Source of the DNA: Podarcis melisellensis
Taxonomy: Eukaryota
Reading direction: 5' to 3' (one strand)
NCBI GenBank assembly: GCA_964234715.1
Contig: OZ174284.1
DNA: 64,000 nucleotides
The translations under genes and the position numbers were made by a program. Shown here in pieces: positions 5,860-62,112 of the stretch (its first letter is position 1; every line of letters begins with the position of its first letter). The notes under the pieces are model-generated. The model made no database searches. It was not told the origin of the DNA and worked only from the letters and a program-made list of their open reading frames with translations.

Positions 5860-5913
<54 letters not shown>
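5860..5913. repeat. (AAT)n microsatellite (LINE tail derived)
   Basis: Direct observation. Confidence 0.95.

Positions 5914-6110: not shown

Positions 6111-6160
<50 letters not shown>
6111..6160. repeat. (TC)n microsatellite
   Basis: Direct observation. Confidence 0.95.
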
Positions 6161-6163
<3 letters not shown>

Positions 6164-15423: not shown

Positions 15424-15790
15424 GACGCGGGTGGCACTGTGGTCTAAATCACAGAGCTTAGGGCTTGCCGATCAGAAGGTTGGCTGTTCAAATCCTCACA
15501 ATGGGGTGAGCTCCACTTGTTTGGTCCCAGCTCCTACCCACCTAGCAATTTGAAAGCACGTCAAGTGCAAGTAGATAAATAGATACTGCTCTGGCGGGAA
15601 GGTAAACAGTGTTTCTGTGCGCTGCTCTGGTTCACCAGAAGTGGCTTAGTCATGCTGGCCACATGACCTGGAAGCTGTCTGCGGACAAAACGTCAGCTCC
15701 CTCGACCTATAGAGCGAGATGAGCGGTGCAACCCCAGAGTCATCAGTGACTGGACCTGACGGTCAGGGGTACTTTTATCTTTACCTTTAC
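15424..15790 (+). mobile_element. Sauria SINE, full length
   Basis: Colinear with the copy at 568-917; ACCTTT tail; flanking CTCCCAG repeat. Confidence 0.9.
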
Positions 15791-26372: not shown

Positions 26373-26456
26373 TGCAGGCTTTCTCTGAAGCCTGGAGAGC
26401 AAGAGGCATCGGTGCGCACCGACCCCTCTCGCTCTCCAGGCTTCAGGAAGCTGTCC

Positions 26457-27923
26457 GCAAGCCTTGCACGCCCGGCAGGAGCTCCCGCCCAGCGCGCGAG
26501 GCTTGGGGCGGCAGCCTGTTGCCCAAAGCACAGGGAGCCCTCCGGAGGGCTCCCTGTGCTTCGGGCGAGTGTTTGCAAGCCTTGCGCCCGGCAGGAGCTC
26601 CTGCCAGGCGCGCAAGGCTTGGGGCGGCAGCCTGTTGCCCGAAACACGCGGAGCCCTCCGGAGGGTGCCCCGTGCTTCGGGCGAGTGTCTGCAACCCTGC
26701 GCACCCGGCAGGAGCTCCTGCCAGGCGCGCAAGGCTTGGGGCGGCAGCCTGTTGCCCGAAGCACAGGGAGCCCTCCGGAGGGCTCCCCGTGCTTCGGGCG
26801 AGTGTCTGCAAGCCTTGCACGCCTGGCAGGAGCTCCCGCCAGGCGCGCAAGGCTTGGGGCGGCAGCCTGTTGCCCGAAACACGCAGAGCCCTCCGGAGGG
26901 TGCCCCGTGCTTCGGGCGAGTGTCTGCAAGCCTTGCGTGCCCGGCAGGAGCTCCCGCCAGGCGCGCAAGGCTTGGGGCGGCAGCCTGTTGCCCGAAGCAC
27001 AGGGAGCCCTCCGGAGGGCTCCCCATGCTTCGGGCGAGTGTCTGCAAGCCTTGCACGCCTGGCAGGAGCTCCTGCCAGGCGCGCAAGGCTTGGGGCGGCA
27101 GCCTGTTGCCCGAAGCACAGGGAGCCCTCCGGAGGGCTCCCCGTGCTTCGGGCGAGTGTCTGCAAGCCTTGCGCGCCCGGCAGGAGCTCCCGCCAGGTGC
27201 GCAAGGCTTGGGGCGGCAGCCTGTTGCCCGAAGCACAGGGAGCCCTCCGGAGGGCTCCCCGTGCTTCGGGCGAGTGTCTGCAAGCCTTGCGCGCCCGGCA
27301 GGAGCTCCCGCCAGGCGCGCAAGGCTTGGGGCGGCAGCCTGTTGCCTGAAGCACAGGGAGCCCTCCGGAGGGCTCCCCGTGCTTCGGGCGAGTGTCTGCA
27401 AGCCTTGCACGCCTGGCAGGAGCTCCCGCCAGGCGCGCAAGGCTTGGGGCGGCAGCCTGTTGCCCGAAGCACGCGGAGCCCTCCGGAGGGCTCCCCGTGC
27501 TTCGGGCGAGTGTCTGCAAGCCTTGCGCGCCCGGCAGGAGCTCCCGCCAGGCCGCAAGGCTTGGGGCGGCAGCCTGTTGCCCGAAGCACAGGGAGCCCTC
27601 CGGAGGGCTCCCCGTGCTTCGGGCGAGTGTCTGCAAGCCTTGCGCGCCCGGCAGGAGCTCCCGCCAGGCGCGCAAGGCTTGGGGCAGCAGCCTGTTGCCC
27701 GAAGCACAGGGAGCCCTCCGGAGGGCTCCCCGTGCTTCGGGCGAGTGTCTGCAAGCCTTGCGCGCCCGGCAGGAGCTCCCGCTGGGCGCGCGAGGCTTGG
27801 GGCGGCAGCCTGTTGCCCGAAGCATGCGGAGCCCTCCGAAGGGCGCCCCGTGCTCCGCGCTGCCAGCTGCCGCCTGCAAGCCTTGCGCTCCCGGGGGGAG
27901 ATCCCCCGGTGCGCAAGACTTGC
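26457..27923. repeat. Tandem array of 12 full copies plus 1 degenerate copy of a 118-bp GC-rich double-palindrome unit
   Basis: Unit starts at 26457, 26575, 26691, 26808, 26926, 27044, 27162, 27280, 27398, 27516, 27633, 27751, 27876. Confidence 0.97.
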
Positions 27924-29272
27924 CAACACCAGCGCCGAGCGGCGATGGGATTCGGGAGGGAGCTCGCTCGCCGCCCCGCGTGTGCTCGCCGCCGCCGCCC
28001 CACCTCTCGCCGCCGGACTCGCCCGCCTCCCTCCCACGGCACACCAGGCAACGTCTCGTGGCACACTAGTGTGCCGCGGAACACCGGTTGGGAAACACTG
28101 GTCTATACAATGGTTTAAAAATAAGAAAAAGCAGGCTATTCAACAATTTGGGAAATTACAGCTGTATTATATGATTTGGCCTCATGTGAATGTTAAGCTT
28201 TATGCAGCATTTATATGTGGCTATATATTAGAGTTATCTTCTCTCCTGGTTTTATCCTACATATAGGATGCAATTATCCCCTAATGAATCCTTATCACAT
28301 ATAGCAATTCATTAGTCTTCTGTGAACTGACTATGCTCCCTCTTTCCTGTCATTTTACTCTTCACAGAAAAAATCTGTAATGAGTTGACACATGTACAGT
28401 TTGCTTTTGCTGCAGCTTTTCATTTCATGCATTAATTTACAATAACTTTTGCCATCCATATCAAGTGCATGGGCGCTTAACCATGGTGCAAGTTTCTGAA
28501 ACAGGCAAAAAATAAAATAAAATCATCTGTTCCTTTTGTCAGTGCAAGGAACCCAATTTTTCCTTGGAGCTCCAGTTCATTTAAATTTATATTGCAATGA
28601 ACAGCTGACAGCTCTTTGGAATATAACAGAGGCCTTAAAAGAACAAACCAGAGAGGGGAGGAAAAGATAGAGATGGATGGATCTATCAATTTCAGTTTCT
28701 CTCTCCCCCCACCTCCCAGTTTTAAGTTCAGTTCTCCGTTCATTTTGCATCAGTTTCCACATCAGTACAGGTGACGTACAAAGGCATGATTTCTTACAGA
28801 GAGCAGACACTGCATGACATTTCACAGACAGAATTTGCATGTGCGGGTAAGGCGACCCCTTAAGTAAACTGGTCTCAAGCCTTTAGAGATGATTTGGGCA
28901 GACACAATGATAAAATACATAATAGTGTGGTATTTACCGTACTTTTCTGTGTATAAGACTATCTTTTTTTTCTTTAAAAAATCATGCTAAAAAGTTGTTG
29001 TCGTCTTATACATGGGTAGTGCATAGTGTGGACATTTGATTGGTTGCTGCCATGGCTCTCAGCGGCTATTGTGCGTGTTATTGGTGGCTGCGTCAATGGA
29101 CGGTGTTGATTGGCTGGCACTCCGGCAGTTGGGCAGGCAATTGGCGATGGGACAGATGGGAGGCGGATTTTGTAATGTGTGTAGGTGAGAGATTTTTAGC
29201 AATCCCCCCTTTAAAAAGCTCGATACCCCTGGGTAATCTCCCCCAAAAAAGCTTGACCCCTCTGTGCCATCT

Positions 29273-29638
29273 TGTCCCATTAAACTTTAATTAGTTTAAT
29301 GTAAATGCCCAGTGCACTTCCTTCTTTAAAAGTCTCACCACGGCAGAGGATTTCGCGCAGCAGCTAAGAAGGGCAGGAGAGGCAGCATCTTCCCAAAAAG
29401 GAGTCCTGGAGCATGCGGTTTGTAAATCAAAAAATAAGGTTTATTTACAAAACACCAAAAAACAATCCTGGCGACGAACCACACATCTCAGCAAAACACA
29501 CACCCAAAAGGGAGAAGGGGAAGAACAAACAAACAGGGGGACTATTTATACAGACTCATGTTCCTGGAAGCCTAACGACCTCCAGCTGCTCAGTGATTAG
29601 AGCGTTTCTGCTACTCTTTTAACCCTTTGATAGCAACA
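29273..29638 (-). repeat. 3' LTR (366 bp)
   Basis: No difference from the 5' LTR found by eye; AATAAA on - strand at 29445-29440. Confidence 0.95.
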
Positions 29639-29647
29639 CCCCCTCTC
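29639..29647 (-). promoter_or_regulatory. Polypurine tract GAGAGGGGG
   Basis: Directly abuts the 3' LTR on the - strand. Confidence 0.9.
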
Positions 29648-29673
29648 GCTCGTAACACTGAGCTGTACCAACC

Positions 29674-32600
29674 TTAATACAAATTTAAACCTGAACAGAA
29701 ACATTTATGAGATTGCGGACTCAAAGCTTTTGTAAAACCGTCTGCGAGATTTTCTTGGCTTGGACAATACTTTAGTTCAATTAAACCTTGTTTTACACTT
29801 TGGCATACATTTTGATAACGGATATCCAAGTGTTTTGTGTGCGCCTTGAATTGACCTGATTTAGCTAGTTTAATACAAGGTTGATTGTCTTCCCACACTC
29901 TGATAGGTAGGGAACATTCTCCAAACAATTCTTGTACCAGTTGCTTATAAAATTCCAGTTCTCTACATATATCTGATAACGCATTGAACTCAGATTCAGT
30001 TGAACTTAAAGCTATAAGTGATTGTTTTCTTGATCTCCAACCAATTAGTGCATTTCCAAATTTTATCGCCATTCCTGACACTGATTTTCTATCTGGTCCA
30101 GCATCTGCCCAACTGCTGTCGGCCCAACATTCAAGTTGTGTGCTGCCCTCTGCTGATAGTTTTAAGCGAAAGCTTTTGGTAGTTTGGAGATACCTTAGAA
30201 CTCTTTTTACTCCTTGCCAAGCATGCATTGATGGTTTTTCAGCTTGTCTACACAGCATGTTGACAGCATATGTTATATCGGGCCGAGTCCACTGTGCAAT
30301 GTGGAGTAGACTGCCTATCGCTGACTGGTAAACCCCGGGATTACAGAACTCTGCCTTTTGCTCAGTTTGAGCATCCTTTGTGTAACTTAACTCCATTGGG
30401 GTTTTAACACCAGCACAGTTGTTCATTTTAAACCTTTCCAGCAACTGCTGGATTTTAGCTTCTTGGCTAAGCCAATAGTTACCATTTTCATCTTGCTGAA
30501 TTTTAACTCCTAGATAAACAGATACATTGCCTAGTGATTTTAACTGAAACCTTTCTCCAAGCTTTGTGGCAAATTGTTGTGCAAGTTTATCATCCTTTCC
30601 ACTGTATAATAAATCGTCAACAAATATTAAAACTGCTTCTTGTTCACATCCCGAGCCTTTTAGATAAAGACACGCATCTGCTGCGCTCTTTCTGAACCCC
30701 ATGCTCTCTAGAGCATCGTTTAAGCAGGAATTCCAATTACGGGCGGACTGTTTCAACCCATAAATGGATTTGTGTAGGCGCCAGACCTGGTTTGGCTTGT
30801 CTCCTTCAAAACCTGGTGGTGGTGTCATATAGACTTCCTCCTGTAAGTCTGCATTTAAATAAGCCACATTGACATCAAAATGAAACAGCTTATTTCCCTT
30901 CTTAGCTGAAGAGGCTAGAAGCATTCTTAATGACTCCGATCTTGAAGTAGGGGCATAGATTTGAGAATAGTGAACACCTTTGCGCTGCGAAAACCCTTTT
31001 GCAACTAGTCGGGCTTTATATTGCAACTCTTCAGTAGTTGTGGGCTTTAAACGATATACCCATCGACAACCTACAGCTTGTTGCCCTTTCGGAAGCTCTG
31101 TACTTGTAAACACACCGAGAGACTTCATTGAAGCCATCTCCTTTTCCATTGCTTCCTGCCACTTTACGGCTTCTGAGCTTGGAAGCTGTTGTACTTCCAT
31201 ATAGCTTTCTGGCTCACACTGTGCCATATTTACGTATACACTTGTCACCTTAAACCGCTCTGGCGGCTTGCCCTTCGTGGCGCGTTTTGACCTGCGCAAT
31301 TGCTCCTCTTGTGCCCCCTCTGACCGTTGGCTGTCAGAATCTGTCTCAGACTTTATGTCTGGACGTGCCTCTAGGGATAAAGACCTCCGTTTAGATACCT
31401 CCCTTGGGCTTGGTGTTGCAGGTGACCTGCTTTGCTTTTGCTGTCTGCTAGGCCTACTGACTGGCGAAGTTGGAGCACTCCTAGATTCTGGCTTTTCTAC
31501 CTTAGGAGAAGAACCTCGTGCCTGATCAGAATCTGCATCTGAACCGTGTGCACCATCCCCTTCTGGCTCATCACTCTCTGGACTTTCTTTCTCAGCATGA
31601 ATGCCTAAATCATCTCTCAAAATGTCAGGGTTAGCGTGTAAGTGAGTCCATCCGGACTGCTCACAAAAATCAGCGCTCCTACTGAGGACCACTCTTGTAG
31701 TATCCCCACCTGGGTCCACAAACCTCCAAGATTTGGCATGTGGTTCGTACCCGCAAAAGATGAGTTTCCTAGCCCTTGGACTTCCCTTTTTCCTTAACGC
31801 TTTTGGGATAAGTACATAGGCTTGAGATCCAAACACCCGAAAGTAATTAACTTTGGGCTTCTTCCCATATAAAGCAAAATAAGGCGTAGTATCAATTACC
31901 GAATTATATACTCGGTTCAGAATATGAGTAGCCGCCTGCCAGGCTTCCGCCCAGTAACTTTGAGGAAGTTTAGCATCAAACAACATAGAGTTTGCCAACT
32001 CTTGCAGAACCCTATTTTTACGTTCGGCCACGCCTCCTTCTTGGGGGGAATAAGGTGTAGACAGACGATGCTTAATTCCCTTTTTCTTAAAGAAATTCTG
32101 CAACACAGACCCGGTAAATTCTGACCCTCTGTCTGTCTGAAAAGCAAGTACTCTAGTACCGAATTCAAGTTCTACCGCATGAACCCAATTTTTAACTGTT
32201 TCTGCAGTATCTGCTTTTGTTTTGAGAGGAAAAAACCATGTAACCTTTGTTTTGTCATCCGAGAGACACAGTGCATACTTTGAACCTCCCATGCTAGCAA
32301 CAGGCATTGGGCCACACAGGTCCATATGCACAAGTTGGAATACTTTGTCAGATTTCCTATCTGAACTGGGATAGCTGCATCTATGAACCTTCGCACTTTT
32401 GCATGCAGTACAATCCAAATACTTAGTACATTTGTTCAATTTGCACCCTTCTGATAATTCAGGTTGCCTTTTAACATACTGAAAATTAATATGCCCTAAA
32501 CGGCGGTGCCATAAATGAACACAAGAATTATGGGTAGGCGTGTTCACACAACCAGCATGAACCTGTTCAACTTCATCTGGACTTGTCTCAAAATAATATA

Positions 32601-33159
32601 ACCCATTTCTGCATTCCACCTGCAAAAGAGATACGTTATTCTTTGAAATAGTGCAAACCCCATTTTCAAACACAGTTTTAAACCCGTTTCTATCAAGTTC
32701 TGACACAGACAAAATACACCCCTTCAGTCCCTTTAGCACGTAGGCATCAATTTCTGTTTGCAAACAATTCAAGAACACTGTGCCTACAGTCTCTAAGGAA
32801 CGTTTAGTTGAATCTGCCATTGTCACAACTTTAGGGGTTAGCAAATGTCTGCAATTCTGCAAACGGACACTAGATGGCGCCACCAGGTGGTGAGATGCAC
32901 CACTGTCGATCAACCAGCGTAGATTGCTGCCTTGGCCACGCCCTTGCATCAACGCCATTGCTGAAGCCATGTGCTGTGTGCTGTGGGAGTAGCCACGACC
33001 TCCTCCTCTTCTTCGACGTCCCCTGGAACTCCTTGTCTGGTAACTAGGGGTAACGGCCTTGTTGCTGTCTTGACCAGGTTCACGTGTGCAATTCCTGATT
33101 AGGTGGGAAGGGGAACCACAGCGAAAACAGTGTCTAGCAACTCTTTTGCTTGCAACCAA
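29674..33159 (-). CDS. Copia polyprotein frame, 1161 codons: zinc knuckle, protease, integrase, reverse transcriptase, RNase H (true start uncertain)
   Basis: CFRCGSPSHLIRNC (CCHC); WLIDSGASHH (PR); HLWHRRLGH..CTAC, VHMDLCGP, TDRGSEF, VAERKNR (IN); KARLVAKGFSQ, IYGLKQSARNW, FVDDLL (RT); ADSSWA, STESEF, EDNQ, NLADGFTKAL (RH). Confidence 0.95.
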   Translation of the reverse strand: MVASKRVARHCFRCGSPSHLIRNCTREPGQDSNKAVTPSYQTRSSRGRRRRGGGRGYSHSTQHMASAMALMQGRGQGSNLRWLIDSGASHHLVAPSSVRLQNCRHLLTPKVVTMADSTKRSLETVGTVFLNCLQTEIDAYVLKGLKGCILSVSELDRNGFKTVFENGVCTISKNNVSLLQVECRNGLYYFETSPDEVEQVHAGCVNTPTHNSCVHLWHRRLGHINFQYVKRQPELSEGCKLNKCTKYLDCTACKSAKVHRCSYPSSDRKSDKVFQLVHMDLCGPMPVASMGGSKYALCLSDDKTKVTWFFPLKTKADTAETVKNWVHAVELEFGTRVLAFQTDRGSEFTGSVLQNFFKKKGIKHRLSTPYSPQEGGVAERKNRVLQELANSMLFDAKLPQSYWAEAWQAATHILNRVYNSVIDTTPYFALYGKKPKVNYFRVFGSQAYVLIPKALRKKGSPRARKLIFCGYEPHAKSWRFVDPGGDTTRVVLSRSADFCEQSGWTHLHANPDILRDDLGIHAEKESPESDEPEGDGAHGSDADSDQARGSSPKVEKPESRSAPTSPVSRPSRQQKQSRSPATPSPREVSKRRSLSLEARPDIKSETDSDSQRSEGAQEEQLRRSKRATKGKPPERFKVTSVYVNMAQCEPESYMEVQQLPSSEAVKWQEAMEKEMASMKSLGVFTSTELPKGQQAVGCRWVYRLKPTTTEELQYKARLVAKGFSQRKGVHYSQIYAPTSRSESLRMLLASSAKKGNKLFHFDVNVAYLNADLQEEVYMTPPPGFEGDKPNQVWRLHKSIYGLKQSARNWNSCLNDALESMGFRKSAADACLYLKGSGCEQEAVLIFVDDLLYSGKDDKLAQQFATKLGERFQLKSLGNVSVYLGVKIQQDENGNYWLSQEAKIQQLLERFKMNNCAGVKTPMELSYTKDAQTEQKAEFCNPGVYQSAIGSLLHIAQWTRPDITYAVNMLCRQAEKPSMHAWQGVKRVLRYLQTTKSFRLKLSAEGSTQLECWADSSWADAGPDRKSVSGMAIKFGNALIGWRSRKQSLIALSSTESEFNALSDICRELEFYKQLVQELFGECSLPIRVWEDNQPCIKLAKSGQFKAHTKHLDIRYQNVCQSVKQGLIELKYCPSQENLADGFTKALSPQSHKCFCSGLNLY

Positions 33160-33246
33160 ACCCTTACTCTAGCCTTCCAATTTTGCCAATTTTTTCCCAT
33201 TGAGTCGCGTAAACGGGACAGTAAAACTTTCCTGGGACTCTGCCAT
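33099..33246 (-). pseudogene. Remnant gag N-terminus (MAESQESFTVPFTRLNG/KNWQNWKARVRVWLQAKELLDTV), frameshifted and truncated
   Basis: Fits the copia gag N-terminal motif L-nG-N(Y/W)-x-x-W-K...L...L-x-x-x-V (DUF4219-like) if one A is removed from an A6 run; abuts the zinc knuckle directly. Confidence 0.8.
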
Positions 33247-33501
33247 CCTCCCTGGGGCTTAGGAACGATACTCACACACCTGTAGACCGTCTCCCAGCTG
33301 CTGAGGTGGCTCCTTGAGGAATCAGACGTCTTCCAGCGAGTACAAACTGCGCAGTGCCTCTTTAAAACTTTTCTAGGCACGTTGCAGGACTCAAGCTGCT
33401 TTGGAGGCTTTCGTTGTCGGCAACCGCTTCTGTCTTCACTCCAGTCCTTGCATAAATCACTCTGAACTGCTCTCCTTATCTCCTTCTTGACGTACAAACA
33501 T

Positions 33502-33509
33502 CCATAACC
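33502..33509 (-). promoter_or_regulatory. Primer binding site GGTTATGG (copia/Hemivirus type, internal region of tRNAiMet)
   Basis: Immediately follows the 5' LTR; equals the first 8 nt of the Drosophila copia PBS GGTTATGGGCCCAG. Confidence 0.75.
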
Positions 33510-33875
33510 TGTCCCATTAAACTTTAATTAGTTTAATGTAAATGCCCAGTGCACTTCCTTCTTTAAAAGTCTCACCACGGCAGAGGATTTCGCGCAGCAG
33601 CTAAGAAGGGCAGGAGAGGCAGCATCTTCCCAAAAAGGAGTCCTGGAGCATGCGGTTTGTAAATCAAAAAATAAGGTTTATTTACAAAACACCAAAAAAC
33701 AATCCTGGCGACGAACCACACATCTCAGCAAAACACACACCCAAAAGGGAGAAGGGGAAGAACAAACAAACAGGGGGACTATTTATACAGACTCATGTTC
33801 CTGGAAGCCTAACGACCTCCAGCTGCTCAGTGATTAGAGCGTTTCTGCTACTCTTTTAACCCTTTGATAGCAACA
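33510..33875 (-). repeat. 5' LTR (366 bp)
   Basis: Starts TGTTGC, ends GGGACA on - strand; TATAAAT at 33787-33781; AATAAA at 33682-33677. Confidence 0.95.
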
Positions 33876-34227
33876 CATCTCCCCCCATTTTCTTAAATAT
33901 GACTCCCCCAAAATAGGGGGTGTCTTATAGACGGGAAAGTATGGTAGTTACCATTCAACTTAGCAGCAATGTAGAATTGCTTACTTCTGTGCCTTGTATA
34001 CATCAAAGATGAGCAAAAATTGAATACATGACAGCATGCCATTTTTTTCCAGCATCAGGATGCAGTTGTGGGAAAAATGGCACTCTCTGGTTATCACTGC
34101 CTAGTTACCAATTGTTGCTATTCTTCACTCAGCATGCTTACCTGAAAGGTGAGGCTGAAAGTGAACAACTGAAGGAAGGAGGGAGCAGAAAAACTACAAA
34201 AATAATTGTCTATTTGAACTAGGAAAA

Positions 34228-34392: not shown

Positions 34393-34978
34393 AATAATAT
34401 TCCTGCAAAAAACCCTCACTGGGCTCAACCGTGAAGAGTGCTCCACATTTAATATACCTTGCAGTGCATTTACAAGCTAGCCTATATATGTGTGTGTGTT
34501 TTAGCTGAAGGGGGGGGAGCTTCATTAAGCAGCGCCTTTTTAGTAAAAATCTTCACTTTTTCAAGTTCAATCATTTCAGGGAGATAAAACTAAAAGATGT
34601 GAAAGGATAGAGATATAGTAGTCTGGTAGCTTCCTCCTCCACAAACCCTGGTAATAAAACAAACAAACAGAAAAATCGAAATACTATCAAGGGATAATTT
34701 ATATGGGGATGCCTGAGTTGGGCAGAATCTTCAACGCTTTTCCTGTGCTCTGAGAGAACCTGTGATATGTGATGGTATTGATTTTTATAGCTCCTTCCCC
34801 AGAAAGCTGTATGGTGTTTGATGTTCCTGAAAGTTAGGTCACCTAAAAGATACTGCATGTCCATCTGGATCTCAAGTAGGAGCCCCTGAACCATGTACTG
34901 ATCATTCAAAAATGAATGTATATTTCCTATGGAAGTGAAGACAGCAAATTATGTATATAGATGGAAGGACATTTACAA

Positions 34979-35113
34979 GAGGCATAGGCGAACTCGGCCC
35001 TCCAGATGTTTTGGGACTACAACTCTCATCATCCCTAGCTAACAGGACCAGTGGTCAGGGATGATGGGAATTGTAGTCCCAAACATCTGTAGGGTTGAGT
35101 TTGCCTATGCCTG
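34979..35113. mobile_element. Short palindromic hAT MITE (135 bp)
   Basis: AGGCATAGGC / GCCTATGCCT ends, 8-bp TSD ATTTACAA, internal ACTACAACTC(T)CATCATCCCT inverted repeat. Confidence 0.85.
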
Positions 35114-45491: not shown

Positions 45492-45627
45492 CAGGCTTCC
45501 TCAACCTCAGTCCTCCAGATGTTTTGAGACTACAATTCCCATCATCCCTGACCACTGGTCCTGCTAGCGAGGGATCATGGGAGTTGTAGGCCAAAAACAT
45601 CTGGAGGGCCGAGGTTGAGGAAGCCTG
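45492..45627. mobile_element. Short palindromic hAT MITE (136 bp), related to 34979-35113
   Basis: CAGGCTTCCTCAACCTC / GAGGTTGAGGAAGCCTG TIR, imperfect 8-bp TSD. Confidence 0.85.
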
Positions 45628-46003
45628 TTCTAATCAAGGGGATTCAGGCAGACATGGAAGCTTCAGAGAAACACTGCTTCTTTTGGATAGGGTTTTTTTT
45701 AAAAAAAAAATTAAATAAAAATTAATTGACATTTACAAGCCAGTGTTGCTTCAAGCTAATAACATTTGAGACATCTCCCTGAAATGACACCATTAGTGCC
45801 AGCAGTATAAGTAGTGTTGTTGTTCATAAAATTAGTGGGGGAAAGCTTCTCAGAGAGACTATTAAGCATTTGGAGCTAGGGAAGAAAGATGTTAAAGTGA
45901 ATCTTTGTTTCCTCCTCCTAATCCCTGCACTCTCATGCCGTAATGAAAGAAAATAAAAGCCAGACAATTACTGAGTAATTTTCATGATATCAATTCCTCA
46001 TAG

Positions 46004-57074: not shown

Positions 57075-57129
<55 letters not shown>
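57075..57129. repeat. (ATA)n microsatellite (LINE tail derived)
   Basis: Direct observation. Confidence 0.95.

Positions 57130-62058: not shown

Positions 62059-62112
<54 letters not shown>

Follow-up and report, generated by a model that had tools for sequence, protein, structure and literature searches.

The element and its parts

The window considered here is the whole 64-kb stretch of Podarcis melisellensis contig OZ174284.1, and it holds on its minus strand a copia element of 4603 bp (29273-33875), the parts of which are collected in Table 1. By descent this is a Ty1/copia element (Pseudoviridae-type), but it is an incomplete one, without the capsid-like domain. It has direct long terminal repeats (LTRs) with TG..CA ends, a 5-bp target-site duplication, and the domain order protease, integrase, reverse transcriptase (RT) and RNase H, with the integrase upstream of an RT of the RVT_2 type. 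What the copy lacks is Retrotran_gag_2, the capsid-like domain, which is present in a full-length sibling (P0204, described below). An earlier, sequence-only reading of the window had described the two LTRs as identical over 366 bp and the target-site duplication as perfect, and both descriptions are borne out: the repeats agree at 366 of 366 positions, and AGATG stands at either end of the element.

The 5' LTR carries TATAAA at 33782-33787 (LTR position 89) and AATAAA at 33677-33682 (LTR position 194). The sequence that follows this LTR, at the putative primer-binding site (PBS), starts with GGTTATGG, which is putatively complementary, over 8 nt, to the anticodon loop region of tRNAiMet; Drosophila copia uses that region for internal priming. 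A tRNA scan and an Rfam scan of the 64-kb window were both empty. The window holds no second LTR of the element's kind and no solo LTR, and a tblastn search of it with P0204 gave no second copy and no other fragment of the family or of gag.

Table 1. Parts of the copia element and their positions in the window.
Feature	Position	Strand or frame	Basis or remark
Target-site duplication AGATG, 5' side of element	33876..33880	-	
5' LTR, 366 bp, TG..CA ends	33510..33875	-	identical to 3' LTR
Putative PBS GGTTATGGATGTTTG, abuts 5' LTR	33495..33509	-	placed by position alone
Gag residues 1-18 MAESQESFTVPFTRLNGK, start ATG 33244-33246, same frame as pol	33193..33246	-	tblastn against P0204 residues 1-18, 100% identical
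A-run, first break: gag frame changes by one base	33190..33195	-	homopolymer assembly error possible
Gag residues 19-36 NWQNWKARVRVWLQAKEL, other frame than pol	33138..33191	-	weak DUF4219 match (E = 2.4e-5); P0121 residues 17-36, 95% identical
TAG closing the AUG-initiated frame after 25 codons	33169..33171	-	
Open frame, 1161 codons plus stop, zinc knuckle to RNase H	29674..33159	-	
Deletion junction, second break, GAGTT[G]CTAGA; 574 nt (Gag residues 37-227) gone	33137..33139	-	tblastn, alignment, codon logic
CCHC zinc knuckle CFRCGSPSHLIRNC	33088..33129	-	weak zf-CCHC Pfam match
Protease	about 32680-32916	-	
Integrase	about 31648-32604	-	
RT	about 30391-31113	-	
RNase H	about 29677-30390	-	
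Polypurine tract (PPT) GAGCGAGAGGGGG, adjoins 3' LTR	29639..29651	-	
3' LTR, 366 bp	29273..29638	-	
Target-site duplication AGATG, 3' side of element	29268..29272	-	
tblastn match to P0204 residues 1-18	33246-33193	frame -2	
tblastn match to P0204 residues 17-36	33197-33138	frame -3	
tblastn match to P0204 residues 227-1380	33141-29680	frame -2	

The long open frame starts at a TTG right after a TAG (33169-33171) and has no internal stop. Its Pfam matches stand in copia order, namely a weak zf-CCHC, Pol_BBD (residues 82-160, the protease beta-barrel), gag_pre-integrs, rve (272-372), SH3_retrovirus (the SH3-like integrase domain) and RVT_2 (683-923), and the DSG, HHCC, D/D/E, FVDD and RNase H motifs can all be read in its translation. 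The frame had been described as running for 1161 codons without stops and with its catalytic motifs kept, and that description stands. An exact look-up of this open reading frame (ORF) from four start points found no entry in the protein collection.

Upstream of the zinc knuckle, three-frame translation gives a gag remnant of 36 codons (the first 108 nt of gag), spread over two frames. The sequence-only reading had counted about 40 gag codons; the N-terminal remnant is indeed present, but it is of this smaller size, and the frame shift at the A-run had been missed. The supposed gag motif “LDTV” turns out to be an out-of-frame reading of the right-hand side of the deletion junction (..A R H C..). 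No continuous Gag-Pol frame runs from the gag AUG; there is a 25-codon ORF, then a TAG, and the frame is broken twice. Since the AUG-initiated frame ends after 25 codons, the copy is unable to make Gag or Gag-Pol. We considered whether the two frame changes compensate each other and so restore a fused ORF, and rejected this: the ATG and pol do share a frame, but the TAG lies in the 20-codon stretch that is out of frame.

Pol had also been called intact. As an open frame it is, but to judge from its sequence it would be left without a simple route to translation, since its first AUG, codon 64 (32968-32970), comes only after the zinc knuckle, and the frame of the gag AUG stops after 25 codons. 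Between the TAG and the codon-64 AUG there is no AUG in any frame, and the 5' leader has about seven further upstream AUGs.

A full-length sibling family and the extent of the deletion

With the whole ORF as query, a word search reached no relative above about 50% identity, the best named one being from Podarcis lilfordi (P0002, “Pol polyprotein from transposon TNT 1-94”), a more distant vertebrate copia with 49% identity. The close family escaped this search because a protein of 354 amino acids, which fell outside the length range, stands for its 90% cluster, and the family was reached by a separate search with the first 300 residues of the Pol frame. The representative, P0121, is a gag-protease fragment from a read assembly, 95% identical to the window copy. 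Its cluster includes P0204, which is a full Gag-Pol of 1381 amino acids on a 4401-bp contig, together with three pol fragments. P0204 and the window copy have the same gag N-terminus, zinc knuckle and domain order, and from the knuckle onward their Pol sequences are 97.14% identical over 1153 residues, with 33 differences and no gaps. They differ in that P0204 has Gag residues 37-227 and an unbroken gag frame, whereas the window copy is without both.

In the alignment with P0204, for which the gag and pol pieces of the window were joined with X at both breaks, the window copy is missing 574 nt, made up of 191 codons (residues 37-227) and one further base. In P0204 the Pfam match to Retrotran_gag_2 covers residues 28-201, and the deletion takes about 95% of this capsid-like domain, so that the absence of a capsid domain, as first noted, is confirmed. 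P0204 and P0121 (95-97% identical to the window copy) show that a full-length sibling family with a complete Gag exists, which supports the earlier suggestion that the copy is a deletion derivative. P0204, a protein from a read assembly, is also a possible autonomous partner of the window element. The searches with pieces of the element gave family members with either a full gag or pol alone.

Two other proteins, P0001 and P0210, represent a sister family. Both come from read assemblies, on different contigs, and they are 99% identical to each other and 51% identical to the window Pol. They resemble the window copy in that they belong to the same clade, have a truncated capsid-like domain and keep Pol open. 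Their truncation, however, is smaller, lies in frame and is common to two distinct sequences: the C-terminal half of the domain is lost (positions 3-77 of the 172 in the Retrotran_gag_2 profile remain, and 78-172 are missing), and a single Gag-Pol frame of 1276/1277 amino acids stays open. They could be a short-gag lineage, or else the normal form of their family.

The 90% cluster of P0121 also holds peptides of 41-46 amino acids from many ENA contigs (MKNIKMLEGNRLLE...FRMSRETF), which are like the N-terminus of a Harbinger transposase. As candidates for junction peptides these were rejected, being unrelated Harbinger-like peptides, and their presence in the cluster is evidently a clustering artefact. 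The last seven residues of P0121 itself (EIGRAHV) are presumably read-through into an Illumina adapter.

Structure of the junction

Across the deletion junction the window reads AAAGAGTTGCTAGACACTG. In a full-length copy the flanks would be L36-W37 (TTG TGG) on one side and A227-A228-R229 (GCN GCT AGA) on the other, as taken from the residues of P0204 and P0121. The sequence-only reading had put the junction at GACACTGTTTTCGC (33121-33134), and its true position is a few bases upstream of this (Table 1). By codon logic, which presumes that the progenitor agreed with P0204 and P0121 at the flanking residues, the microhomology at the junction is 1 nt, or 2 at most, and in the placements that match, the deleted segment begins with TG.. 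or GT.. and ends with ..NG or ..CN. The deletion is out of frame (3n+1). By the same logic no placement of the junction has GT..AG, GC..AG or AT..AC ends, and no canonical intron ends are possible, since TGG is the only codon for W37 and A227-A228 read GCN GCT. It had been asked whether GT..AG or microhomology borders the missing segment; as far as codons deduced from proteins can tell, the latter is present at 1-2 nt but the former is not. Taken together, this speaks for a template jump or for end joining and against splicing.

Drosophila copia makes a spliced subgenomic RNA, and descent from an RNA of this kind, spliced so as to lack the capsid region and then reverse-transcribed, had been offered as one origin of the window copy. 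Other copia-type elements, e.g. BARE-1, make spliced subgenomic RNAs as well (PMC3735527), but the known splices of this sort remove pol or abolish its expression, and do not remove the capsid region. With no canonical ends available at W37 and A227-A228, and with a junction that is out of frame, we reject this origin, which is the least probable of those discussed here.

The junction is spanned by a 60-mer at 33108-33168 (minus strand) and by the identical-junction sequence GAGTTGCTAGAC, and a word search with the junction peptide gave no candidates in the protein collection. Long-read assemblies are prone to errors in homopolymer length, and one might suppose that the assembly process created the deletion, the A-run length or the two together. 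We consider this highly improbable, since a clean loss of 574 nt in a gap-free, 97%-conserved element with identical LTRs would be an untypical error.

Age of the insertion and constraint on Pol

From zero LTR differences and a squamate rate of 0.0013 substitutions per site per million years (Myr; PMC13295347), a hand calculation puts the best estimate for the insertion age near zero and limits it, at 95% confidence, to about 3 Myr. The identity of the LTRs therefore allows up to about 3 Myr in place, during which the segment might have been lost by a genomic deletion at the locus, through replication slippage or end joining, and the 1-2 nt of microhomology would also fit the latter. We nevertheless regard a post-integration deletion as unlikely, because very few mutations are expected in a copy without LTR differences. 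Deletions of more than 500 bp, moreover, make up a small fraction of spontaneous indels, and deletions made by RT are frequent by comparison.

The 33 replacements that separate the window Pol from P0204 have a mean BLOSUM62 score of +0.61, versus -0.40 +/- 0.28 for a random non-synonymous set (P = 2e-4), and no nonsense codon is seen in Pol where about 2 are expected under neutrality. The conservative replacements and the absence of nonsense codons show that Pol was constrained by purifying selection for the greater part of the path that separates the window copy from P0204, which fits a recent loss of gag. Constraint of this kind is expected from active full-length ancestors, and it carries no information on selection after gag was lost.

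This limits what the open pol frame can say in favor of a true two-component system, i.e., one in which the gag-less element is selected as a supplier of Pol and its partner gives the capsid. Such a system would suit the open frame and its constrained past evolution, and one may speculate that Pol is translated by reinitiation at the AUG at 32968-32970, after the 25-codon upstream ORF; the stretch free of AUGs between the TAG and codon 64 is consistent with this, as is the report that BARE-2 RNA is found on polysomes, from which its authors suggest that BARE-2 pol is translated (PMC3735527). Against this, full-length relatives already make Gag-Pol, so that the gain from another source of Pol is hard to see, the 5' leader has its additional upstream AUGs, the constraint on pol may wholly predate the deletion, and the evidence consists of a single copy. 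The frame change in the gag remnant and the lack of an AUG opening pol before codon 64 likewise speak against a designed Pol donor, and we consider a two-component system very unlikely.

Origin of the defective copy

We lean, with a confidence only somewhat above even, to a private lesion, made in the reverse transcription that produced the window copy, which would have been “dead on arrival”. The copy would be a recently integrated, defective member of an autonomous Ty1/copia family that encodes a single Gag-Pol of 1381 amino acids. The loss of 574 nt would be a near-blunt, non-splice deletion, most likely a template jump of RT during the replication cycle, and with the deletion arising in that same cycle the lesion would be private to this copy. 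The one-base change of frame in the A-run would add a second defect, with translation from the gag AUG ending after 25 codons, and pol would be open through youth and through descent from a lineage that was selected until recently, not through a maintained gag-less state. What is required in cis appears to be kept, from the LTRs, the PPT and the putative PBS to the 5' leader and 108 nt at the start of gag, but for any renewed movement the particles and enzymes of full-length relatives would be needed to package and copy the RNA. In support of a private lesion, the junction is out of frame, unlike a product shaped by selection, the searches gave no second copy, and coding defects are frequent among new insertions of LTR retrotransposons, at about 30-40% in two families of wheat (PMC9744471).

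Several points weigh against this explanation. There are two separate lesions in gag versus none in 3.5 kb of pol, which would be somewhat easier to understand if at least one of them was inherited from a gag-defective parent, and so implied at least one round of trans-mobilization. The sister-family proteins P0001 and P0210 have in common a capsid truncation that is in frame and leaves Gag-Pol open, which suggests that capsid-truncated, pol-open forms can persist in the clade. The frame change in the A-run, for its part, could be a homopolymer assembly error. Finally, the anatomy, the size of the deletion, the broken translation, the full-length sibling and the absence of splice-type ends are observed, whereas the timing and cause of the deletion are inferred, as is the private nature of the junction, which is deduced from priors.

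The copy may instead come from a parasitic sublineage that lacks gag and propagates in the manner of BARE-2, one ancestral deletion having been mobilized repeatedly in the particles of the 1381-amino-acid family. Such a sublineage would keep the LTRs, PBS, PPT and packaging region, with pol open either by youth or by recombination with co-packaged full-length RNA. That gag has two independent lesions in a copy whose LTRs are identical speaks for it, as do the existence of a full-length potential helper family, the capsid truncation common to two distinct sequences of the sister family, and the precedent of barley BARE-2/BARE-1 (PMC4350172, PMC3735527). The copy is also BARE-2-like in that gag appears untranslatable from its reading frames while pol stays open. 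On the other side, no second copy of the junction was seen, the junction-peptide search was empty, and the piece searches gave full-gag or pol-only proteins; these are weak negatives, as host genome DNA lay outside the searched collections. Among metagenome contigs the nearest relatives were four loci at only 27-33% identity, and the viral contigs and prokaryote genome contigs held no close relative. We regard a parasitic sublineage as a tentative possibility, to be taken seriously but not expected.

Comparison with known defective elements

A gag-defective element that borrows capsid protein is a concept already established for barley BARE-2. The BARE-2/BARE-1 pair of barley, which belongs to the Copia superfamily, was reportedly described by Tanskanen et al. 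in 2007. BARE-2 is without Gag synthesis, keeps its pol and is packaged in BARE-1 particles (PMC3735527), and the pair has explicitly been termed a two-component system (PMC4350172). It is thus the known exception to the general statement, made in the sequence-only reading and broadly right, that non-autonomous LTR elements usually lose pol and not gag (PMC4350172, PMC3735527). The window element and BARE-2 are alike in being copia-type elements with no Gag and an open pol, each with an autonomous sibling able to supply Gag in trans. They differ in the lesion itself, since in BARE-2 the gag coding sequence is kept and the start codon alone is lost, through an 8-bp deletion, whereas in the window copy about 95% of the capsid-like domain is physically gone and the remnant changes frame. 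BARE-2 is, moreover, a conserved and abundant subfamily, the packaging of which in BARE-1 particles has been proven experimentally, whereas the window element is known from a single copy, and its host is an animal rather than a plant. We conclude that the window copy is a defective member of a copia family, at most BARE-2-like in its working, and not a demonstrated subfamily of the BARE-2 type.

TR-GAG, LARD and TRIM elements (PMC4350172) are similar to the window copy in being non-autonomous and reliant on a helper, with LTRs, PBS and PPT kept, but they show the opposite pattern of loss: either pol is gone (TR-GAG keeps only gag) or all coding sequence is. The dead-on-arrival copies of wheat Angela and Cereba (PMC9744471) share with it a young insertion, intact ends and a coding defect that probably came from error-prone reverse transcription. 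The estimates for those two families, however, count in-frame stops, whereas in the window copy one module has been cleanly removed and the others are open.

Other features of the window

A GC-rich minisatellite (26452-27854) lies 1.4 kb beyond the 3' LTR of the element; it consists of about 12 copies of a 118-bp unit (93% matches), has open frames in all six frames, and reaches a local GC content of 66%. Two repeats that resemble short interspersed nuclear elements (SINEs), at about 565-920 and 15461-15786, are 82-88% alike, with a tRNA-like head, a body taken to be that of a SINE, and an (ACCTTT)n tail end. Tails of this kind are found in the squamate Sauria SINE and in Bov-B (PMC13295347), and, with the match in Podarcis lilfordi, they agree with a squamate host. 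An inverted pair of 111 nt (34973-35083 and 45523-45633; 86% complementary and 10.4 kb apart) is probably two copies of another interspersed repeat. There are also perfect microsatellites, namely (AAT)18 at 5860-5913, (TC)25 at 6111-6161, (ATA)18 at 57075-57129 and (AAT)18 at 62059-62112. Six other long ORFs of the window gave no Pfam match.

Implications

Copia elements are known from fishes, amphibians and reptiles, and birds and mammals lack them (PMC4350176). A private junction would make the window copy one more defective young insertion, which shows very recent copia activity in this genome, provides a clean example of a deletion of the reverse-transcription type, and marks a locus at which individuals of the population may differ. 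A junction that recurs at independent sites would be a natural experiment on how much of Gag, and of the RNA coding for it, is needed in cis for packaging, and to our knowledge the element would be the first gag-less, pol-retaining copia parasite known from an animal. The fullest form of this idea is a propagating vertebrate sublineage of gag-less copia elements in which pol is selected, is reinitiated after the short upstream ORF and joins the Gag particles of the full-length family, and it is quite unlikely. Were it true, the sublineage would be an animal counterpart of BARE-2/BARE-1 in which the capsid module has been physically lost, and the short-gag forms P0001 and P0210 would point to a recurrent route in this clade.

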